Shown here one piece after another: positions 17,510 through 42,675 of a DNA stretch of 64,000 nt. The position numbers and the translations under genes are program-made. Position 1 is the first letter of the stretch, and the number at the start of each line of letters is the position of its first letter. The notes beneath the pieces were generated by a model. The model was not told the origin of the DNA, ran no database searches, and worked only from the letters and a program-made list of their open reading frames with translations. Location of the stretch: positions 226,699 through 290,698 of the forward strand of contig NW_003314381.1 of NCBI RefSeq assembly GCF_000143415.4, written 5' to 3'. Origin of the DNA: Selaginella moellendorffii (Eukaryota > Plantae > Lycopodiophyta).

Positions 17510-18477
17510 TTGGTTGATCGGCAAGCAAGAATCCAAAGAATGGACATATATAAAATCGTAGCTACCCCAGTTTTCTATATGGCATATTATAAAATGATTT
17601 TTTTTCTTGTATTAATATTTTTTATTGGAAAGCATCTATCAGTAAGAGTTGAAAGAAGTAACTTTAAAATTTTCCCTTTGCATTATAGACATACTATTTT
17701 ACAAGCACTACTTATAGCAATTGATAATCTTGATATAATGAATCCTCATGCTAAATTATATGCTGGAAAGTCACTTGAATATACATATAATGGAATTCAA
17801 GTTTTAATAACTTTTTTATTTAAAGAAAAACCCCCACCTTATTATGATGATCTTTGCCTTGTTTTTCCTGAGCATGCAGTTTATTATTATAGTGGGGCAG
17901 TAAAACAAATTCTTGAAAATTTATTATTACAGTATGTTAGTAATGATCTTGAGATAATAAATTATGTTGTCAATGAATATATTACACAAACTATTAGTTT
18001 AGTCTTTAAAAATAGTAATGATGAGAAATTTTACTCTTTAATTAATAATATTACATATCATGCTAAAAGTATTAATATCAAACTCTCTAATGATATGGAT
18101 TGTATATGGAGACATTCATGTATTAGAAGTATTCATGATTCTTCATACTTCTCTAACATACAAAGTGGAGAGTTTTTAGAATCAAGTAATCATCAATTCA
18201 TATTATTATTGCACTTGAATTGCAACCTTGTGCTTTACAAAGGCAATATTATATTTTGGCAAATAAGTATAGAAGGTATGGGTTGTTATTTAAGAATTCA
18301 AACTGATGGCAATGTTGTGATATATGATCAAAATCATGAAGTTAAATGGACATATAATATATATTGGAAAGATAAATTTAAAGCAATGGCTTTATGTGTA
18401 GAAAATACTGGCCATGTTGTAGTATATGACACTATTGAAGAAACTTGTATTTTTTATGAACCTAAGAATCTAGCTTA

Positions 18478-18478
<1 letters not shown>
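17510..18478 (+). CDS. Putative secreted protein: unknown N-terminal domain + C-terminal bulb-type (GNA-like) mannose-binding lectin
   Basis: Intact 322-codon intronless ORF in very AT-rich DNA. Hydrophobic signal-like segment MIFFLVLIFFIG; lectin motifs IQSGEFLESSN, CNLVLY..W, CYLRIQTDGNVVIYD..W, ENTGHVVVYD. True start is probably ATG 17540 or 17579. Confidence 0.8.
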
Positions 18479-24051: not shown

Positions 24052-26021
<1,970 letters not shown>

Positions 26022-30084: not shown

Positions 30085-30665
30085 TTTACATGTTCAAGCT
30101 TTTAAGAGACTCGATGTGCGAGCGGTGCCAGAGGATCAAGGATCGCATCCCAGCAACGAGGCCCGGAAGAACATGGTCGAGAAGCTAGGCCGCCGCCCTT
30201 CCTGACGCAGCCTCATCAGGTAAAACGTCGGGCAAGTGCCTCGCATCACAATCCCAGGCAAAAGGAGCTCCTCGGGAGGAGATTCACAGAGAAAGTTCTC
30301 ATACTTGTCCAGGAGCTCTTGCAGCAATCCCCGAGGCGATCATCTCCGCCTCTGGATCGCGATCCCTGTCCTTGAAGCTCCAATGCGCAACGAGGCGAAT
30401 GAAACCATCCATCTCCATCTCGACTGCGACACCGAGGAACAGTGCTGCCAGACGCCGTGTGACGATGCGCATGCCAAGAACATCGAGGCAGAAGAGCTCC
30501 AGGAGTGGGTAGTCTTGGACAAGTTCTCGACGTCGGACACTTCCTCTAGCCTATGAGTTTTGGTGACGCAGGCGATGGACTTGACGAGGATCTCCACGGC
30601 CCTGGAGCTGCATGCTATCCTGCTCGGCCGGCTACATCAGGTCCAGACCTAAAAATTCGAGCATG
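30085..30665 (-). pseudogene. Deleted copy of the REase-fold-like family (copy 1)
   Basis: Collinear with 36280-36960 (LLLPGIVMRGTCPTFYLMRL; AVEILVKSIACVTKTHR) with many small deletions and frameshifts. Confidence 0.85.
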
Positions 30666-31588
30666 AGTAGTGAGGGTGAGAGAGAAGCAGTATACTACAT
30701 CATGGGCAGAAAGAATGAGGTGAAGTCTTTCCAGGATTTTCTTGGAGAGATGTGTTTAAGAAGTTGAATTTAACTGTGTATGTGACTTCTACCAGGCAGG
30801 TTTCTTTCCAACCTCATGCAGTGAACTCTAGTGAAAGACATAGTCTCAGCCACAAAAGGGCACAAGCGACAGGAATTATGCGTTGACGATTTGAGAAAGA
30901 CGCTCATCAGAGAAGCAGCAGCAGCAAATCGGTCACAAGCTTGTGGAACTGGAGTCATCATTTGAGTTGCATTGGCCAGGTCAGTCGAAACATAGGATTA
31001 TTCTCAAGAATATCATTTCTTCTTGCCGTGACCCATGATTGTAATGTTGAAGAATCTGCCGCACCTTTGCAGGAGTTAGAGAGTTCTTATCCTCCATTTA
31101 GACTTGCTCTATCAACATTGCTTTTGCCAAGTTGTTGTTCTGCTGGCCAAAATCTGTTTGTGTCGAAATCTTCTTTAGGTTTTGCCAGACTTTAATTTTG
31201 AGAGGATTGTGAGAAGCATCAAGCAGAAGTTAGGTGTGTTATACAACGGCCATTTTGATCCCTTGATCTGATTGTTTTGCCTGGAAATTTACTACATTCT
31301 AAGAAGCTCATCAAAGTGTCCACTATGGCAGCATGGAAGTTTGCTATCTCAAACTTCTTGTGGTGTGCCCAATTTACATGTTTGCTCCTCTCTTGCAACA
31401 AACCCATGGCTGCTGTTGGAGCCGAGAAAGCTCCCTGGATTTCCCCACCCCTGTGAAGAGTTGTGAAAAGTTATCAAAAAAAAAAAAAAAAAGAACAAAT
31501 GCTTCATGAACCCTTAACTTTGGCTTTCGCTAGTCTTAGTTTATGACTTAGGAAAATAATAAATAATTATTTCTATAGCTGAATAAAA

Positions 31589-31615
31589 ACACACACACAC
31601 ACACACACACACACA
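31589..31615. repeat. (CA)n microsatellite
   Basis: Directly visible, just downstream of the minus-strand lectin ORF stop. Confidence 0.95.
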
Positions 31616-31622
31616 ATTATAA

Positions 31623-32597
31623 TTAAGCTAGATTCTTAGGTTCATAGAAAATACAAGTTTCTTCAATAGTGTCATATACTACAATATGACCAGTATTTTC
31701 TACACATAAAGCCATTGCTTTAAATTTATCTTTCCAATATATATTATATGTCCATTTAATTTCATGATTTTTATCATATATCACAACATTGCCATCAGTT
31801 TGAATTCTTAAATAACAACCAATACCTTCTATAATTATTTGCCAAAATATAATCTTACCTTTGTAAAGTACAAGGTTGCAATTTAGGTGTAATAATAGTA
31901 TAAATTGATGATTACTTGATTCTAAAAACTCTCCACTTTGTATATTAGAGAAGTATGAAGAATCATGGATACTTCTAATACACGAATGTCTCCATGTACA
32001 GTCCATATCATCAGATAGTTTTTGATTAATAATTTTAGTATGATATATAATATTATTACTAAAAGAGTAAATTTGCTCATCATTGTTATTTTTAAAGGCT
32101 AAACTAATAGTTTCCATAATATATTCATTGACAACATAATTTATTATCTCAAGATCATTACTGACATACTGTAATAATAAATTTTCAAGAATTTGTTTTA
32201 CTGTCCCACTATAATAATAAACTGCATGCTCAGGAAAAACAAGGCAAAGATCATCATAATAAGGTGGGGGTTTTTCTTTAAATAAAAAAGTTATTAAAAC
32301 TTGAATTCCATTATATGTATATTCAAGTGACTTTCCAGCATATAATTTAGCATGAGGATTCATTATATCAAGATTATCAATTGCTATAAGTAGTGCTTCT
32401 AAAATAGTATGTCTATAATGCAAAGGGAAAATTTTAAAGTTACTTCTTTCAACTCTTACTGATAGATGCTTTCCAATAAAAAATATTAATACAAGAAAAA
32501 AAATCATTTTATAATATGCCATATAGAATACTGAGGTAGTTGCGGCTTTATATATGTCCATTCTTTGGATTCTTTCTTGTCGATCAACCAAATGCAT
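31623..32597 (-). CDS. Putative secreted unknown-domain/bulb-lectin protein, second intact copy
   Basis: Intact ATG-initiated 324-aa ORF, gap-free and highly similar to 17510-18478, retaining QTDGNVVIY. Confidence 0.82.
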   Translation of the reverse strand: MHLVDRQERIQRMDIYKAATTSVFYMAYYKMIFFLVLIFFIGKHLSVRVERSNFKIFPLHYRHTILEALLIAIDNLDIMNPHAKLYAGKSLEYTYNGIQVLITFLFKEKPPPYYDDLCLVFPEHAVYYYSGTVKQILENLLLQYVSNDLEIINYVVNEYIMETISLAFKNNNDEQIYSFSNNIIYHTKIINQKLSDDMDCTWRHSCIRSIHDSSYFSNIQSGEFLESSNHQFILLLHLNCNLVLYKGKIIFWQIIIEGIGCYLRIQTDGNVVIYDKNHEIKWTYNIYWKDKFKAMALCVENTGHIVVYDTIEETCIFYEPKNLA

Positions 32598-32949
32598 AAC
32601 AAATATGGTTACTATTTAAAATGATGTTCTTTACATATGGCATTTGTAAATGTGGTACAAAGATAGTAAATAACTAAAGTGAACAGCTTAAGAATAGTTT
32701 ATAGGGTTTAAAAATATAGAGCCAATAATTCACCCTCTTAAATAGTGGAAATTAACTGTCCTTGGTTATACTATTCAAACTTTAGTTGAGAAATTAGTCT
32801 TTGCATGTTCACTTGGCCAAATGAGTATGAAGATAAAATTTTTAAGTGCAATTAATCAATATTGTAGGGGTTCCCAACATTAGCAAATGCAATCTAATGA
32901 ATAAGTTTTTTTAACCAAATCAAGTATACTTAACTAATATAAATTCCCT

Positions 32950-34490
32950 TCAACTTAGAATAGACAATGTACTCATTGTTGAAGAGTTCCCAAAAATTCA
33001 TCTAGAAGTTAAGGATACTTAGCCACAAAAGAGGATGACTCCCACGTTACATCCTCCATAGGCATATCTTTCCATTGCACTAGATACTCAACAAGTGTAG
33101 TGCATCATGTAACAACTTTTTGACATGCATCAGGAATCTTAAAAGGTTCAATTGTGACCTTGTAACCATCCATGAAACTAGGTGGTGGTACATCATTGGG
33201 TTCAATGTGTGTGGCATGATTATCCCCAAACAGTTTAAGCAATGATACATGGAAGATAGGATGAATCTTCTTCCATGTGTCAAAGAGCTTCAACTCATGA
33301 TCATGAGAATTTTATAAGACTTCAAAGGGACCAAAATAGCATGGCCACAACTTAGGATACTTATGATCAGTAGATGCATAATGATGCAAAGCTATATACA
33401 CCAACACTTTATCACCAACATCAAACTCAAGATAGCAGCGACATCGGTCAACATATTTCTTTTATTGTTCTTGAGCATGATCAACTTATCCCTCACAGTC
33501 GTAAGGATACCAGTCATTTCATCAACCACCTCATTGATAGTCTCCAAGCGAGACTTAGCCAACCAATTGGCTGGACTTCGAGGAATAAAGCCATAAGCAG
33601 CATAAAAAGGAGCTATGCCAATTGAAGCATAGATGGAACTGTTATAAGAAAATTCCATCAAAGGCAGATAGTCCTCCCATGCACTATGGCTTTTATCTGT
33701 ATAGCTTCGTAACATATCCTCCATAGTACGATTCGTTCGTTCAGTTTGGCCATCACTTTCTGGATGAGAGGAGGAACTGAACTTCAATTTCATTCCTAAA
33801 ATCTCAAATGATGATAGGAGGAACTGAACTTTAATTTCATTCTTAAAATCTCAAATAGACTAGTCCAAAAATGGCTAGTAAATCGATCAGATACAATTGA
33901 ACGAGGGAGACCATGATACTTGAACACATCCTTGATGAATGCCACTTGACTGCCACTGATAGCCTTCTTGCAGGGAAAGAAATGAGCAAGTTTGGTCAAG
34001 ACCAAAACTGCATCATTCTTTCGCTGAGTACATGGTAACTCGGTGTTAAAATCCATCAAAATGGATTCCCATCGTCCTTGTGGAATTCCTAGAGGATGTA
34101 ACAATCCAGCAGGGCGCTGTGTATCAAGCTTCGTGCGTTGACACTTCAAGCATCCTTGTACATGCATTGTACATCACTCCAGGGCCAAAAATATAATGCT
34201 GCCACTCGCTCATAAGTCTTAATATGGTGCATCATGAGCTTCCTGCAAGATTAGAGTGCACGTCTCCTTGCAATAAGGTACACACATTCGGTCATGAAAA
34301 TATAAATCATCATGGAGAGAATAGTTTTGACAAAGCGAAATCTCAACAGGAGTTCTTTTATCCTTCTTCAAGCTTTCATAAATCACCTTAAAATTCCTGT
34401 CTGAGCATACTTCACTGGAAAGGAAGCTGGAAAATTCGTGATAACCACTGAAATGGGATTCACGCCCTCTCCAAATCAACAAAGTTTAAG
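32950..34490 (-). mobile_element. Ty3/gypsy remnant: integrase + chromodomain
   Basis: HDAPY..CLKCQ zinc finger, WESILMDF, GLPRSIVSDR, HPESDGQTERTNR, GPF, IHPIFHVSLLK and a chromodomain-like tail; frameshifted. Confidence 0.9.
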
Positions 34491-35039
34491 CTGGATGATC
34501 AATCCGAAGTTTTTAAGTTGAATTATCTTGTATGGAGAACAAAGTAAGAAACACCACCACATCTCACACCGGGTCACTTAGAAATTCTTCATCCATCACT
34601 TCTGTACTTTCAGCAAGGGATCGCTCAGGACAGCATAACTTTCAAGCACTCTCTTTGGGAGAGTAGTAGTGGCAGTAGTACCTAGAACAATACTAACATG
34701 ATTGAGTAAAGGGTCTAAACAAGTATAAGGTGAAACTCTCAAACAAAACTCCCTCAAGTACAAAAAGCCCTGCCTCCTAAAACTAGAGCCACCCGTTACT
34801 AGGGAAGCAAGACTCATCCTAGAGTACTCTTCCACTGGATCATAAAGGCTCGAAACTGTGTTTTAGCTGACACAGGTAGGAAATAGTTTTCAACCAAATA
34901 AATTCCCCAAAACCAAAACCCTAGCCAAGCCTTTCACTGGATCGAGCAAAAGATCTCTGTAATCAAATGATCTTGTGTCATGCAAATGCAATGCAATGCA
35001 TTTGCCGAGCACAGGCAGGGAGAAATCTGATCTCCTGGT

Positions 35040-35135
35040 TGACGCTGCTATGCTGCCTGGCGCGATCCCAGAGCACTGCCGATGCCAAGCGCATCTTTGA
35101 TTCCATACCGGAGCACTGCCTCGTCTTGATGCTGT
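35040..35135 (+). pseudogene. PPR fragment
   Basis: LARSQSTADAKRIFDSIPEHCLV resembles an S-type PPR motif. Confidence 0.5.
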
Positions 35136-35242
35136 AGCGCTCTGAAGAAACAGAGAATACTCCCTCTGGGATGCCTCTCAGGAAACGGCTAAGAAAAACT
35201 AAGAACCTTAAACTGGAGGGCCTGTACACCACGTGGCTCCAA

Positions 35243-35965
35243 CACCGTGAATGGATTGGAATTCGGCCTCGCGGGGATGCTCCCCCCGGCGCTGTTCAAG
35301 GCATCGGTGCTCGAGACCAGGACTGTGACTAATCTGACTCGCGCGGCTCACTGGATCACAGAAATCCGGCACTGCCGTTCAGATGGAGGAGATCAAGAGC
35401 CATGAGCAGTGAGAGAGATGGTGAATTTAAGCAGTGTAGATAGATGATAGATCAATGCCAGTTTTTGTTTGATCTATCTTGCAAAGCACAAGAACAATCT
35501 GACGCCTTGCCGCTGCGGCGCATGGCGCTACGATATTTAGTAAGGATTCTGCAAGGCGCCAATACTTGGCCGGATGGAGGGAAATCTCTAGAGGCTGCGT
35601 CTTTCAACTACTCTCGGCTGCTCCGGCGATGCGGCAACGATAAGGCTCTGATGGAAGGCAGGAAACTCCACGCACACCCGGCAGCTCGGCCGTGACATGT
35701 ATCTCAAGTGCAGGAACTTGATAGAGCTTTGTTCTTCCGACGACGTTGCTCCGTGGACACAACTGGTGGCGGCGGCCAATCCTTACGAACTTCCCAATCC
35801 ATGCTCCAGTCGGGATCTCGATCGACAAGATCACACTGCTCACGGTCTTCAACTCTTGTACCAAGGCCGGGGCTTTGAGAAGGGAGAAGTGTTCGTGGTT
35901 ACAGTGACGAGTGTGGCCTTTCAGCTGAAACTGCCGTGGCAACCGCCATCGTCCACTTCTATGCG
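35243..35965 (+). pseudogene. Inverted, deletion-riddled copy of RER 3' end + intergenic + PPR 5' end (source ~520-1500)
   Basis: Exact reverse-complement stretches, e.g. gtgaatggattggaattcggcctcgcggggatgct, agatgatagatcaatgccagtttttgtttgatctatcttgc and ttggccggatggagggaaatctctagaggc. Confidence 0.92.
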
Positions 35966-36279
35966 ATACTAGCACGTTACATTTTCCCATGTTCTTCTTT
36001 TTCGCTATCATATCACGAATTTGGTGTCTCGTTGATCGCAGACGACTGCCCAGGACGTCATCAGCCTCAGCAATTGCAAACGATTGTATGTCCAAAAAAA
36101 AATCTTGAAGTCAATCGGGATGATAAGTAAAGTCTTGACTTGCGACTAGCGTCGACAATTATCTTGTTTTGCAGACAGTGTCTTAGCACTCCTACGGTTT
36201 TTATTTGCTTGGTAATTGAGCAAAAAGGAGAAATGTTTTTAAGTAGCTGTGATTTGATGGATAAAACTCCACCTTCACC

Positions 36280-37068
36280 TTACATAAAGCTTTTGAGGGA
36301 CTCGAGGCACTGTGCGATGTGTGCGCGGTGCTCCGGCACTATGATCGCGTCCCAGGAGCTGGGCGGAACAAGGCCTGGAAGCACATACTGGTCGACTCTC
36401 GTCAAGAAGCCAGGCCGCCGCCCTTGCTTGACGCACTCCACCATCTCCCTGCTCAGCCTCATCAGGTAAAATGTTGGGCAAGTGCCTCGCATCACAATCC
36501 CTGGTAAAAGAAGCTCCTCTGGAGGAGATTCCCAAACATGGTTCTTATATTTATCCAGAAGCTCCTGATACGTAGCAATCCCTGAGGCGATCATCTCCGC
36601 CTCTGGATCGTGATCCCTGTCCTTGAAGCTCCTATCAATTTGGACAACGAGGCGAATGAAACCATCCACCTCCGTCTCGACTACAACACCAGGGCTCGCA
36701 TCCACTTTAGTGTTGCCAATTTTGAGCTCCAGCTTACGCCGTGTTATGCGCATGCCAGGGAGATCGAGGCGGAAGAGCTCCAGGAGCGACTTGGACAAGT
36801 TTTCAATGTCGGACACTTCCTCAAACCTGTGAGTTTTGGTGACGCAGGTGATGGACTTGACAAGGATCTCCACGGCCCTGGAGCTGCATGCTATCCTACT
36901 CGGCCGCAAAGACGCCTGCATGATGGGAGCCAGGTCCAAACCTAAAAGCTCGAGCACATCGCCACCATTGCCACTGCTGCCCTCGTGCGGCTCCTTCCCA
37001 AAGAAATCCTTGAAATTTCTTACCCTGGCCAGGTTGATGCCATAGAAGCCTATATCGCCCCGCCTCAT
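36280..37068 (-). CDS. REase-fold-like hypothetical protein (copy 2, 262 aa, N-terminus probably rearranged)
   Basis: Open intronless ORF, close paralog of 40922-41881; motifs LVVQIDR, DPEAEMIASGIA.YQ, LPGIVMRGTCPTFY, IAQCLESLKSFM. Confidence 0.7.
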   Translation of the reverse strand: MRRGDIGFYGINLARVRNFKDFFGKEPHEGSSGNGGDVLELLGLDLAPIMQASLRPSRIACSSRAVEILVKSITCVTKTHRFEEVSDIENLSKSLLELFRLDLPGMRITRRKLELKIGNTKVDASPGVVVETEVDGFIRLVVQIDRSFKDRDHDPEAEMIASGIATYQELLDKYKNHVWESPPEELLLPGIVMRGTCPTFYLMRLSREMVECVKQGRRPGFLTRVDQYVLPGLVPPSSWDAIIVPEHRAHIAQCLESLKSFM

Positions 37069-38924
37069 GTCAACCCTGAATGAAACCTTAAGAGAGCATT
37101 TATATATATAAGAATGAAGGGCCCAGACCCCCGCAGCCGTCCGATCTCAGGCCTGGGGCAGCCTCAGAAGCCATGGTTTCTCAGGGAGGGGAGGCCACCC
37201 CAGGCCCGGGCCAGGGCCAGTGGCCATGGTTTGGGTGTGGTGACAGAAGGGTTTCTGCCTGTGGCTGCGTGAGCAGCTGGTGAGGGAGTGTGCCAGCAAT
37301 GCAATCCAGCTTTGGCACTCTCTGAATTGCAGTTCAATTGTGCACATTGGCACTAATGGATTGAGTTAGGCAGTGAATCAATTCCTGATGTAAGATATTC
37401 CTGTTCTTGACGCAGTAAAAGAGTTGGCGTGGATTTGTAGATTCGCTGTCTATGAGGTGGTGGAGAGAAGCTATGGAGAACACAAAATGACTTTGAGCTT
37501 TTGATTTCTCAGAGTCTTCCTTGTGTCCCAGTAATAGTCAGTGAAGAACTCACCTGTGTCTGCTCACAAATGTCTGGAAAGAAATTTTTTTTGTTTCTTT
37601 CTGTAACCAAAATTATTTTGAAAGCCTAATGGCATGTGCACTAACAAAATGGTGTTGGGTCAGGAGCAGATGAATTGAAGGTATTAGACTTTTCTTTTGC
37701 AAATAAGCTGAACGTTTCATTAATTACAGTGCCAGATAGAAGTGTGAGGACATGTGTTAGAACCAGTCACGCTACGCACGCACATTTATGGTGAAACGTT
37801 TTCACCCCGTAGCTTCTCTCTGCCACCACCTGCCTATGGCTCTCCAGCTCCTTCAATTTTATCACTTCAAGAATTGGGAAGTTTTACCTCACAAATCGAT
37901 TCCTCCACCTAGCACACCTACATCCCTACTGCAACACTGGTGACTCTCCTCTGCAGCCAAGGGGTCCAGCAGCAGTGGATGACTTTGAGCTCTTGGTTTC
38001 ATGAACGTCTCAGGGTCAGCTTAGAGATCTCAGATATAGTCAGCCAAGGTACAAGGGTGATATGGGACCGAGTTACATGGTTTCTTGGGTGTATGCCAAA
38101 GCTTGGGTCGATTTGGTGGCTGCGTTGGGGGATGACAGAAGAGAGCTTCAATTCAGCAGGGTGAGCAGCTTTTGCAAGCTGGATGCTGTGGAGTATGGTG
38201 TGCCATGTAGACCTGGTGATTTTCAAATGTTCTAAGCTGTGGAGAGGAGGCATTTTGAGAGAGAACCAGATTGCTCCCAAGAAAAACTTGCTGTGAGCCC
38301 AAACTTCCATGCTAGAATGTTCCCAAAATTTGAGTTCTTTGTACTTTTATGTTCCACTGTGAGATGAAGATCTGTTTTAAAATCCTTTTTTGAGCAAATC
38401 CCAGCGAAACTTAGGGGTGAAAGAGACTTTTGCTAGCATGGAATTTACAAGATATTACAAGGCTTTAGAGTTGGAATGAATCAAAATTATGAAGTACATT
38501 TTTCCTAGTTCCCAAGTCCTAACATACTTCATCTCTTCTCTCACAGAAATGATAGAGAAAAACTATTGGTTGGTTTGTTAAGCATAGTAAATAGCAGAGT
38601 GGGAACGTGTGGTCATATGAAGTGCTTGCCAACTAACCAGCATTTGCTGGGTAATTTCTAGTCTATAATAATGAGTTGGCAAACTTTTTAGGCTGTTCGA
38701 TCCAGCCAATCATCTGATAGAAGTGGGTAAAGGTTATTTTTTTAACCATGTAACACTGAAATATTTTGATAAATAGCTGTTTTGTGTGCTTATTGGCTAT
38801 TGTGAGAGAAAAAGGAAATTTGTCACATGTGACATCATGGGTAAAAATCAAACTTGCTCCCTCCTTCTAAGCAGGGCTGCTCCCTCAATCTAGATTGCAT
38901 GCAGCTCTTGATTGAGGCATGGGG

Positions 38925-39725
38925 ATCCATGCAAGATTGATGGTGCTCCATAAATGGATTTATAGGTTGAAAGTTTACTTTCATGTATGCATTGAGGCAT
39001 TGGCTTTGTGAAGAGAGTGTTGGTGATCAGATTCCAAGTGCATGTGTCAATCTCCATAAAAACTTAAGATCAATGTTTGAACTTGGAATTTCTTGGTAGT
39101 AGGACAGTAAACAAGATTGCTAGCTCTAGCCAAAATAATGTCCAATCTTAAGTGAGCTGGGGCATGCTGCTATTGCATTTGTTTTTGCCAATTGCCTCTG
39201 CGAATAACCACACTGTGTTTTCTGCCTACTGCCTCAAGTTGAGCTGCTACAACACAGGTTCTTAAAATTTGTATCAGCACTTCATGGCATGAAAAAGAGT
39301 CCTAAGCAATGTTTGTATACTTGTGCTTTCCAACTCTTTGCTAAACTCCTAATCTTTAGTTAACTTGCTCTAGCTCAAACTCAGTGTTCAATTTGCAGTC
39401 TATCATGATGTGAACATACAATTGATTGTATACAATTGCATTTTACAGATTTGATCTATAAGGATATTTGGCAGAGTTCACCCCTTATATGCAAGCCACT
39501 TGGTATGGACAATAGCAATGTGCTGGGAATGGTGAGGATCTAGGTTGTGAGGATATTGTGAAGTGTTTTATAGTTTCAAAGGCATTTCCTTCAGGTTTAA
39601 TACTTGCTATATGCAGATCATGAATGTCACAATTGGTGGTAGAACAGCTGCATGGCCCTAGAGATCAGGAAGAGATTATTGATAATATGTAGATCAAAAA
39701 ATCTTTGCCCACCGAGCAGCTTAGT
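38925..39725. repeat. Inverted diverged copy of the 19065-19625 flank of the lectin/Trx module
   Basis: e.g. ctccataaaaacttaagatcaatgtttgaact is the reverse complement of ~19521-19552; ccaaaataatgtcca matches ~19463-19477. Confidence 0.8.
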
Positions 39726-39884
39726 ATTAGATATGAAACTATTTTGATTATTGTGATTTATTGTTGGTAAACATTTGGTTTGCTTTAGTCTTTTTTATGT
39801 AAATGGATATAGAAAGTAATTCTTTTGATATATTTCATTTGTATAAGCTCATTGGAAACCAAAAGCTTAAAGTATTCTGCAAAC

Positions 39885-40057
39885 TGATGACTTGGAGATT
39901 TCTCTCTCTTTCTCCACAGGTGGAGGTTTTCCCACGAATCTTTGGCCACTAAGGAGGCGCTAAAACCTAAATGCCTTCTCTTTGCTCTGTGTGTCCAGGA
40001 GCGTTTGCGAGGGCGTGTTGGATCTCAAGCCCAGCAATCACGTCATTCCAGTGTTCT
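39885..40057 (+). pseudogene. Inverted fragment of ADH copy A (introns retained)
   Basis: caggtggaggttttcccacgaatctttggccac...ggatctcaagccc...cacgtcattcc matches the reverse complement of ~22563-22740. Confidence 0.88.
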
Positions 40058-40921
40058 CAAACTGTTTTACATCCTAGTTTTTTGTTATCATGTTTACTAG
40101 AAATGGTTTTTACCAGTGCTGGGTTTTTATCATGCAATTGAAACCTCCTTCGAGTGTGAGCATGGACAGGCTGTTAATTACCCCTATTGAAGCACTGCCA
40201 ATGTTTTGCCTGGTTTTTCTCTTAAGTTATACACTTCAGTTATGCAGTCTTGGTTTTTCTCTTGAGTTATACAACATGCTAGTATAGCTCTATAGTCTAG
40301 TGATAATAGGAAGAAAACTTGAAGGCCAACTGTGAAAAATGCTACTAATACCAACGATTCCATTCCTCCGAGGATAAAGAGCAAGCTTCAACAACCTTAC
40401 CAGCTTCTCTGGATTTGATAATGAAGCATGAACAGTTTTTTTCAGCTGAGACACAATAACAAAGTAGTGAAGCCATCCCATCCACTCATCTGCATATGTG
40501 GTGCCACTTTCATTGACAGAGTAAGACGTCTTAGTGTATTGCCAACTATGAGGAATCACCACCTCCACCGTGCTCCACTTCTCCCATCAGACCATCTCAA
40601 AGACCCAGTTCTGAGCAGGAAATAGAGAGGAAAACAGTATGTCTCCCACATCCAGCGATCCAGCGCCTCCATAAATGCTTTCCCGCCTCCCTACCTCCCA
40701 CAAAATGCCACCTCAACTTACAAGTGTTGCGATCTCTTATTTGCTTGCATTGATTTAAGCTGTGCCAAACTCCCATTGCTTCCACGCGACGTAAATTGAT
40801 TCCACGCGACGTAACCCATGTCCCGCTGCAGCATTGGATCGAAGGCAGCTTGCCAGCACGCCGTCGCATCGTTTCCAGCGAAGACGAGCTCAGATCCAGT
40901 CCATTTGATCATCTCTTCACT

Positions 40922-41881
40922 TTACATAAAGCTTTTGAGGGACTCGAGGCACTGCGCGATGTGCGCGCGGTGCTCCGGCACTATGATCGCATCCCAGGAG
41001 CTGGGCGGAACAAGGCCTGGAAGCACATACTGGTCGACTCTCGTCGAGAAGCCAGGCTGCCGCCCTTGCCCGACGCACTCCACCATCTTCCTGCTCAGCC
41101 TCATCAGGTAAAACGTCGGGCAAGTGCCTCGCATCACAATCCCAGGCAAAAGGAGCACCTCGGGAGGAGATTCACAGAGAAAGTTCTCATACTTGCCCAG
41201 GAGCTCCTGATACGCAGCAATCCCTGAGGCGATCATCTCCGCCTCTGGATCGTGATCCCTGTCCTTGAAGCTCCTATCAATTTGGACAACGAGGCGAATG
41301 AAACCATCCACCTCCGTCTCAACTGCAACCACCTCCGTCTCGACTGCAACACCAGGTCTCGCATCCACTTCAGTGTTGTCAATTTGGAGCTCCAGCTTAC
41401 GCCGTGTGACGACGCACATTCCAGGGACATCGAGGCGGAAGAGCTCCAGGAGCGACTTGGACAAGTTTTCAATGTCGGACACTTCCTCGAACCTGTGAGT
41501 TTTGGTGACGCAGGTGATGGACTTGACGAGGATCTCCACAGCCCTGAAGCTGCATGCTATCCTGCTCGGCCGCAAAGACGCCTGCATGATAGGAGCCAGG
41601 TCCAGACCTAAAAATTCGAGCACATCGCCATCGCCACTGCTCCTTCCTTCCTGCGGCTCCTTCCCAAAGAAATCCTTGAAATTTCTTACCCTGACCACAT
41701 TGATGCCATAGAAGCCCATCTCGCCCCACAGAAAAGTCCTATGAACCCTAATGAAATATACACTCCTTTTCCTCTTTATGTCTTTCACCAGCAATTCTAT
41801 CTGAACGAGATCTCTTTGGTAGAGGAGGCCGTTGCTAGATCCAGATCGAGGAATTCCTACTTCGTCATTGGACCTCTTCAA
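40922..41881 (-). CDS. REase-fold-like hypothetical protein (copy 3, longest, ~319 aa; start uncertain)
   Basis: Open ORF (TTG start in track; may have an upstream exon). Same motifs as copy 2, plus a 21-nt in-frame duplication (VAVETEV twice). Confidence 0.75.
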   Translation of the reverse strand: MKRSNDEVGIPRSGSSNGLLYQRDLVQIELLVKDIKRKRSVYFIRVHRTFLWGEMGFYGINVVRVRNFKDFFGKEPQEGRSSGDGDVLEFLGLDLAPIMQASLRPSRIACSFRAVEILVKSITCVTKTHRFEEVSDIENLSKSLLELFRLDVPGMCVVTRRKLELQIDNTEVDARPGVAVETEVVAVETEVDGFIRLVVQIDRSFKDRDHDPEAEMIASGIAAYQELLGKYENFLCESPPEVLLLPGIVMRGTCPTFYLMRLSRKMVECVGQGRQPGFSTRVDQYVLPGLVPPSSWDAIIVPEHRAHIAQCLESLKSFM

Positions 41882-42139
41882 CGACTCGGCGAAAGGCTTC
41901 CAGAATCCGATTTCTTCATGGACAATCTAATTTAGAAGCTGTTGGAGTACTTACGGCAGGCTCCGTAAGGAGCAGAATCACCATTCCGTTCATCACCAGA
42001 CAGAAGCAAATCCGGATCACACTGTGGAGGATGAAGCAACCGCGATTAGAGATGCTGGTTGCCGAGCTCGGAGGCCACCGGCATCTACGCCACCCACAGG
42101 ACATCATGAGCTTCATGACTGGCGAGTTCGAGCGCCATC

Positions 42140-42675
42140 TGTCAGGCCGTGCAGGGCACGTCTGGTGGTGGCACAGATTACAGCTTTGAATGCGTTCCCT
42201 CCCCCATTGAAAGCTACGTATGTTTAAACTTATTTTTTATTCATCTCAAGAACTTGTAAGCTTTTTCTTTGATCCAGGGTGGTGGTGTTTGCGTGATCGG
42301 ATGAATTATCCCCGGCCACCCAATCCACTCGAGAAACTTTCTCGCATGACGCGTTCTCAAAGGTTTGAAGGTTTCAAGGGAGTAACGCAGCTTCCAGTGC
42401 TCGTGGAGAGATTCGTGACAAAGGCAAGCGATTTACTCGACTCTACGAGAATTTCGTGCGTCTCCATGTATTTCTTCGGATTTTCTGGAAATGTTTACCA
42501 CTCACTGCCTCCCGCTAGCGCAAATCAACGAGGCCTTTGATCTGATACTCGAGGGAAAGAGCCTGCGATACGTTATTTGTGGTGGGCTGACCATGGAGGG
42601 GATTGTCCGAGCGGCTCTGGACACACGAAAAGTTAATACGATTCTTATCTCTCGGGATCGGGGATTTGATCCAGC
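42140..42675 (+). pseudogene. Inverted 3' fragment of ADH copy B with introns and 3' flank
   Basis: [10 protein letters not shown], tttgcgtgatcgg, FKGVTQLPVLVERFVTK, INEAFDLILEGKSLR and tcgggatcggggatttgatccag match the reverse complement of ~23838-24615, with deletions. Confidence 0.9.

Follow-up and report, generated by a model that had tools for sequence, protein, structure and literature searches.

A Selaginella branch of a PD-(D/E)xK nuclease-fold family, probably of foreign origin, with altered catalytic positions

Paralogs in the window and the family to which they belong

The DNA analyzed here, referred to as the window, is a stretch of 64,000 nucleotides from the lycophyte Selaginella moellendorffii (NCBI RefSeq assembly GCF_000143415.4, contig NW_003314381.1, positions 226,699 to 290,698 of the forward strand). 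It carries three paralogous genes, all on the minus strand, two of which are open and one decayed (Table 1), as had been described in a first reading made from the letters alone, here called the sequence-only reading. Based on the evidence set out below we suggest, with somewhat better than even confidence, that these copies form a fast-evolving, Selaginella-specific branch of a foreign PD-(D/E)xK family, which was acquired horizontally and later became non-catalytic yet was maintained.

Table 1. Coordinates of the three paralogs and of features within and next to them (positions in the window).
Feature	Position	Strand	Description
Copy 3	40922..41881	-	319-codon open reading frame from TTG; core exon of SELMODRAFT_429821; predicted nuclease-fold domain at about residues 46-319
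Copy 2	36280..37068	-	262-amino-acid open reading frame from ATG; core of SELMODRAFT_429820
Copy 1	30085..30663	-	pseudogene; 91% identity to copy 3 in aligned blocks; about 18 insertions or deletions; 5' third missing
Copy 3 G177	41351..41353	-	at the beta-2 catalytic Asp of the family; PD to PG
Copy 3 VQIDR	41273..41287	-	replaces VQEDK of the family; E201I, K203R (I201/R203)
Copy 2 PG and QIDR	36685-36693 and 36631-36645	-	G127/I144/R146
Copy 3 tandem duplication	41309..41350	-	in frame, 21 nucleotides, VAVETEV twice, between PG and QIDR; copy 3 only
Upstream exon, database model of 429821	41955..42116	-	joined via a 58-nucleotide GT..AG intron at 41897-41954

In a word search the two open reading frames (ORFs) match SELMODRAFT_429821 and SELMODRAFT_429820 at 99% and 85% identity; the first ATG of copy 3 is residue 55. 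Copies 2 and 3 are 86% identical in protein and 89.6% identical in DNA over 813 nucleotides, the DNA match being that of 40915-41727 with 36273-37061. This match ends at the ORF borders and the flanks do not align: the similarity stops within a few bases of the stop codon and of the copy 2 start codon, though the synonymous divergence (dS) is only about 0.18, so that either the coding part alone was copied or it was homogenized by gene conversion. In copy 1, the insertions and deletions fall within 580 nucleotides, many are not multiples of three, and roughly the first 260 nucleotides of the copy 3 ORF are absent. Two further proteins, 418716 and 444057, have consecutive accessions on a 1.7-Mb scaffold and look like the same open pair on the second haplotype. 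The sequence-only reading had called the genes intronless; this is correct for the conserved domain, which is a single exon, and not for the database model of 429821, which adds a putative upstream exon. RNA reads reach a depth of only 0.3-1.2 at 41826-42000, with no splice joint listed.

A word search with the window proteins recovered four more Selaginella paralogs and two metagenome proteins at 34-36% identity, and repeat searches with one of the latter (P0005) and with the canonical Selaginella paralog (P0027) brought up hundreds of proteins with a length of about 260 residues. From 1.84 billion cluster representatives a profile search returned 2,486 members at E <= 0.001, with 429821 at E 2.3e-69, and a single window protein matches P0005 over its full length (E 1.4e-37). 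The family consensus reads KSGS.W ... ESAVDD ... PDVCIE ... LLVQEDK ... PEAQLIAEAIAAFQ ... IPGI.M.GT.PTFY ... CYEAFK.F. Thus, the motif order that the sequence-only reading had given as fungal is a real consensus, and the strings quoted from the window copies are all present. In the non-catalytic core motifs (VTKTHR, DPEAEMIASGIAAYQ, LPGIVMRGTCPTFY) the window copies stand near this consensus. They resemble the unnamed family in motif order, length, predicted fold and full-length homology, and they differ from it in having PG for PD and QIDR for QEDK, in the long stem branch of their lineage and, in copy 3, in extra insertions.

The word searches bear out that basidiomycetes and glomeromycetes are rich in members of this uncharacterized family. 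The named members belong to Basidiomycota (Mycena, Armillaria, Pleurotus, Amanita, Lentinula and many others), Glomeromycota (Entrophospora, Gigaspora, Racocetra, Scutellospora) and chytrids (Clydaea, Phlyctochytrium, Boothiomyces), and Mortierellomycota and Zoopagomycota are also represented; examples are Clydaea vesicula HK099_003891, Entrophospora 1957_t, Armillaria ARMSODRAFT_889451 and the metagenome proteins P0005 and P0017. Two word searches and the profile search returned no named member from any plant other than Selaginella, and in the word search identities to the canonical Selaginella copy leave a gap from 51% to 94%.

No Pfam domain matches the window proteins at E up to 1, none is shared by the 53 family members scanned, and eight longer members have no added Pfam domain. 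One Armillaria member is labeled "Fungal-type protein kinase" in UniRef, a label that finds no support in these eight. Searches of all PDB chains with a single sequence (phmmer) and with the profile gave no match at E up to 10, the ESM Atlas gave only unnamed basidiomycete clusters and a weak HSDR_N lead at 0.80, and our literature searches found no paper on this family. The sequence-only reading had also likened the proteins to Crinkler-type effectors or toxins. Restriction-endonuclease-type toxin domains of Crinkler (CRN) proteins, which occur in chytrids, glomeromycetes and organisms of oomycete-type lifestyle, have the restriction-endonuclease fold. The window proteins share this predicted fold and stand alone, and in comparisons with the Pfam models neither they (E up to 1) nor the 53 family members had a Crinkler header joined to a C-terminal toxin domain; the likeness is one of analogy, and the binding or decoy role that the sequence-only reading proposed would be conjecture.

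Predicted fold and catalytic positions

AlphaFold models of copy 3 (predicted local distance difference test, pLDDT, 81.6; predicted template modeling score, pTM, 0.81) and of the canonical paralog SELMODRAFT_413451 (pLDDT 93.7) gave the same ranking in an exhaustive structural comparison. The top matches of both models were the human mitoribosome chains 3j7y_5 and 7a5f_s3 (Z 12.0-12.7, 209-218 residues aligned), which Foldseek likewise placed first (E 2.6e-5). Next, for the copy 3 and 413451 models respectively, came the nuclease domains of BpuSI (Z 8.3 and 9.4) and DrdV (Z 8.0 and 9.2), and then TT1808/DUF820, HsdR, NucC, Cas4, Can2, Hjc and other restriction-endonuclease-fold proteins. The models contain the core alpha-beta-beta-beta-alpha-beta arrangement and nearly all top structural matches have the restriction-endonuclease fold. 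From these matches of the predicted structures, the assignment of the window family to the PD-(D/E)xK fold, as proposed in the sequence-only reading, is well supported.

We take chains 5 and s to be mL37 and mL65; the residue ranges fit the lengths of these proteins. In the animal mitoribosome, mL65 and mL37 form a pseudo-dimer of "repurposed endonucleases" that binds ribosomal RNA (review, PMC8998825), a case in which an inactive nuclease fold has been retained for binding. The plant models align with the two chains over 209-218 residues, compared with 137-150 for ordinary nuclease domains. The sequence identity is only 7-10%, and the PDB searches detected no homology to MRPL37/MRPS30 at the sequence level, so that the likeness is structural only. 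BpuSI and DrdV (type IIG/IIL), HsdR (type I) and Uma2/DUF820 (TT1808) share the core fold at Z 6.7-9.4, and canonical members of the window family carry a PD...(E)xK motif that matches the one in these nuclease domains, whereas the window copies are without it. In addition, the bacterial nucleases are domains of larger enzymes; the window family is a stand-alone eukaryotic or viral protein and has an extra N-terminal region of about 90 residues.

For a census of catalytic residues, family sequences were aligned to a hidden Markov model of the family, and 253 had residues at the scored columns. The beta-2 Asp is retained in 224 of these (89%), the beta-3 Glu in 218 (86%) and the Lys in 210 (83%). 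The family signature E..PD..QEDK is E..PG..QIDR in the window lineage, in which, haplotype partners included, the three sites read E-E-N / P-G / Q-I-D-R and all three catalytic positions are changed; only one protein outside this lineage, among those scored, has the triple change. The substitutions that the sequence-only reading reported, D to G and QEDK to QIDR, are present in both open copies. The motif of an active member, an Asp at the start of beta-2 and (D/E)xK on beta-3, is absent from the window copies, whereas the family including 413451 reads PD and QEDK. The window copies thus share the predicted fold and, given these substitutions, are probably not enzymes.

Selaginella has two other loci of the family. 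Locus 413451/445933/406833 retains the full E..DD..PD..QEDK signature and probably encodes an active enzyme; its proteins are 39-41% identical to the window copies, with which they share the predicted fold and a common Selaginella clade (99/98). The canonical gene SELMODRAFT_413451 (L005:10001-10900) contains a 54-nucleotide GT..AG intron with an in-frame TGA inside the most conserved motif (GIVMLG / TCPTFY), an intron that neither the window copies nor the aligned viral and fungal relatives have. At the other locus, 406237/403783, PD is kept, but the second motif is GKDR or GKVR, E and K being lost.

Constraint, expression and phylogenetic position

The GC content at third codon positions (GC3) is 0.66 in the window copies and 0.67 in a neighboring PPR gene, compared with 0.29-0.47 in virus-like relatives. 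This host-like GC3, the plant genes flanking the cluster, the intron in the canonical paralog and the presence of the pair on the second haplotype indicate long residence in the plant.

Four methods gave a ratio of non-synonymous to synonymous substitution rates (dN/dS) of 0.33-0.38 between the open copies. Neutral simulation, with random substitutions at the observed transition share, predicts 44.7 +/- 3.4 non-synonymous codons where 32 are observed (P=0.00015), and a stop codon arises in 77% of runs. Insertions and deletions between the open copies are all in frame, and the similarly diverged copy 1, with its approximately 18, serves as an internal control. The open copies have thus been under purifying selection since the local duplication, in agreement with the retention under constraint that had been proposed from the sequence.

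Two raw RNA-seq runs from Selaginella libraries were sampled, about 12% of each being read. Reads cover 40856-41825 (copy 3) at a depth of 2-10, and some match the window allele exactly. In almost all of them the first mate lies on the plus strand, which in most stranded libraries means minus-strand, i.e. sense, RNA. Copy 3 is accordingly transcribed in the sense direction at a low level. Other reads on copy 3 have consistent variants and break at 41727 into "ATGAGAC...", the start of the form found on the other haplotype and in copy 2. A splice site at 41727 was considered and rejected, as the loose ends read ATGAGAC, the beginning of that form (MRRG...), and the reads stem from an allele or paralog. 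None of the three outcomes that the sequence-only reading had named as speaking against it (no match to the restriction-endonuclease fold, a broad distribution in land plants, no expression with dN/dS near 1) was observed.

In an unrooted maximum-likelihood tree of 58 sequences (LG+C20), the seven Selaginella sequences all group in a single clade (99/98) that divides into three deep sub-branches, and the stem of the window sub-branch has a length of 1.25 changes per site. The Selaginella clade is nested in a clade of 22 rows (97/82), the remaining rows being 13 metagenome proteins, the chytrid Clydaea and a metagenome sequence on a long branch; the Basidiomycota form a separate clade (100/100). 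The nearest relatives are metagenome proteins, several of them on giant-virus-like contigs, and not fungal proteins, which refines the sequence-only reading, where the family was described as fungal-type. The restriction of named members to fungi and Selaginella and this placement in the tree agree with the horizontal acquisition that it had put forward as possible. Its statement that the family was amplified in the plant applies to the three diverged loci and the local triplet; the amplification is modest and one copy of the triplet is dead.

The gene content of the metagenome contigs is informative about their nature. P0017 and P0021 lie on the same 86.9-kb contig with intronless genes for Rpb1, DUF5757, Rpb2, a SNF2 helicase, a RING protein and MutS; P0018 comes from a contig of 97 kb on which orphan ORFs are densely packed and which also encodes a glycosyltransferase, a Kelch protein and Rpb1; and P0033 lies on an IMG/VR contig, the only locus that a scan of IMG/VR gave. 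P0013, which is 50% identical to the Selaginella proteins, adjoins a protein-primed type-B DNA polymerase (DNA_pol_B_2; Logan contig, L003:1054-3798), which suggests Polinton-, virophage- or linear-plasmid-like elements as further carriers of the family. By this gene content, the contigs of the nearest relatives look like giant viruses and related mobile elements, and the donor may therefore have been a virus. Because the tree is unrooted, we only infer the direction of transfer and the donor (a virus or an early fungus).

Genes from such sources have been described in Selaginella before. Maumus et al. 2014 reported genes resembling those of nucleocytoplasmic large DNA viruses with no other viral genes nearby, among them EFJ10148, a gene of unknown function whose homologues are confined to a few fungi and a single chlorovirus, and a family of exoribonucleases that came from viruses and evolves under purifying selection; only two transferred gene families are reported for Selaginella (PMC4083422). 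The genes of that study (PMC4083422) and the window family share the genome, the kind of event and the lack of nearby viral genes. EFJ10148 is not among the accessions of the window family (EFJ07451/2, 19885/6, 33594, 36949, 26042, 14584, 33210), and the searches run here returned no chlorovirus member.

Origin and maintenance of the copies, and other features of the window

Combining these observations, we suggest the following scheme. A giant virus or an early-diverging fungus may have been the source of one gene that an ancestor of S. moellendorffii took up horizontally, and inside the plant this gene would have split into three loci: (i) 413451/445933/406833 would have kept the full signature and gained a spliceosomal intron, (ii) 406237/403783 would have lost E and K, and (iii) the window branch would have lost D, E and K before its local duplication. 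The window branch would now consist of two copies kept open by purifying selection, copy 3 being transcribed at a low level, and a third that has decayed. The proteins would no longer cut nucleic acid; with their fold intact they may have been retained to act without catalysis, either by binding nucleic acid or by pairing with and modulating an active paralog. The fold has other dead members that are kept for non-catalytic roles, such as mL37/mL65, ERCC1 and EME1. A predicted complex of copy 3 with 413451 scored 0.62, one control scoring 0.52, and counts neither way on binding.

Several points weigh against this scheme. Regarding constraint, a dN/dS below 1 averages the whole time since duplication, so that a recent loss of constraint would go unseen, and the end of the copy 2/3 similarity at the ORF borders fits gene conversion, which would blur the dating. 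Regarding expression, that of copy 3 is low, and RNA covers copy 2 only at 36200-36780 and only with variant-letter reads from another allele or paralog, so that copy 2 has none of its own. Regarding the donor, no capsid gene was seen on the metagenome contigs, whose viral nature is read from gene content, and the viral structures of BFVD, cultured-virus proteins included, gave no match to the model at E <= 0.001. Finally, the loss of catalysis is deduced from sequence, about 27% of the sequences scored differ at one or more of the three catalytic positions and partial degeneracy is thus common, and the window copies retain the helix Glu (E132/E133), the Asp of QIDR and a basic R for K, from which a re-wired site could be built.

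The alternative that survives best, which we regard as unlikely though deserving serious attention, is that the copies are non-functional relics of a transferred gene in slow decay, their open frames and low dN/dS reflecting past constraint or gene conversion with an expressed allele or paralog. In this case one would expect what is seen in several respects: copy 1 has already become a pseudogene, none of the three catalytic residues is left, expression is low with no reads of its own for copy 2, the ORF stays stop-free in 23% of neutral simulations, and the long stem branch fits relaxed constraint. What it leaves unaccounted for is the significant deficit of non-synonymous changes, the freedom of the open copies from frame-breaking insertions and deletions compared with their number in copy 1, the presence of the same open pair on the other haplotype and the closeness of the non-catalytic core motifs to the family consensus. 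Given these observations, we favor maintenance of the fold.

A more far-reaching version holds that a captured nuclease of giant-virus type was "disarmed" and that the dead copies bind nucleic acid or act as inhibitory or guard partners of the active paralog or of incoming viral or fungal nucleases of the family. We consider this doubtful. If it were true, the unusually close structural match to mL37/mL65 would mean that this virus and fungus family was the free-living source of that mitoribosomal pair in animals.

Alternatively, the window proteins could still be nucleases or other hydrolases with a site re-arranged from the helix Glu, the Asp of QIDR and Arg203. That catalytic residues of PD-(D/E)xK enzymes can migrate is known from general work on the superfamily, and E132/E133, D202 and a basic residue at 203 are indeed in place. 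Against this, Gly and Ile now stand in place of the beta-2 Asp and the beta-3 Glu, both of them acidic metal ligands, seven residues are duplicated between the two motifs of copy 3, and the triple change is nearly confined to the window lineage. We therefore hold a re-arranged site to be improbable and retain the view that catalysis was lost.

An old eukaryotic gene passed on vertically in Selaginella and lost in all other plants, or a plant that acted as donor to viruses and fungi, is a very improbable origin. The unrooted tree gives no direction and the Selaginella clade is deep with three old sub-branches, as vertical descent would have it; however, the two word searches and the profile search brought up no other named plant, no sequence is 51% to 94% identical to the canonical Selaginella copy, and the family is diverse among fungi and among metagenome or virus-like sequences, within which Selaginella makes up one nested clade. 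From this distribution, vertical descent in plants is unlikely. Fungal or viral contamination or mis-assembly, for which the otherwise non-plant family and the lack of an intron inside the domain of the copies might speak, is effectively refuted by the plant genes on both sides of the cluster, the host-like base composition, the pair on both haplotype scaffolds, the plant-type intron of the sister paralog and the reads from Selaginella libraries on copy 3.

Few cases of gene transfer from giant viruses or fungi into land plants are documented. With horizontal acquisition followed by loss of catalysis, one genome would hold three stages of a transferred nuclease: intact with a gained intron, partly degenerate, and fully disarmed yet selected, i.e. 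a compact setting in which to study the change of a foreign enzyme into a host protein without enzyme activity. The fold, pseudo-nucleases and virus-to-Selaginella transfer were each already known; what the window would add is the fully disarmed sub-lineage still under constraint. The practical weight is modest. The analysis also brings to notice a large nuclease-fold family of more than 2,400 clusters without a Pfam model and its structural link to the mL37/mL65 pseudo-nucleases.

The cluster is flanked on both sides by plant genes, a RETICULATA-related gene and a PPR gene, and by retrotransposon fragments. Among the window ORFs scanned there were no viral hallmark genes, the other large ORFs with Pfam matches being these plant genes, and virus-type genes lying side by side were not found in the window, which holds only single genes of the nuclease-fold family. 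Between copies 1 and 2, at 33392-34482 (minus strand), broken ORFs resemble by eye pieces of retrotransposon integrase or pol; two of them have no Pfam match at E <= 0.01. An inverted repeat (42126-42579 against 24095-24603, 77% identity) holds a C-terminal coding fragment of alcohol-dehydrogenase type. At 39919-39953 a 35-nucleotide pile of RNA reads has loose ends on both sides and resembles a short, exon-like match to a transcript that originates elsewhere. Finally, the ORFs at 31623-32597 (minus strand) and 17510-18478 (plus strand) are intact paralogs of each other, 324 and 322 amino acids long. They are extremely AT-rich (GC 0.26 and GC3 0.16, with a window GC of 0.43), and their last approximately 50 residues give a weak B_lectin (bulb-type lectin) signal (E 0.02-0.05).

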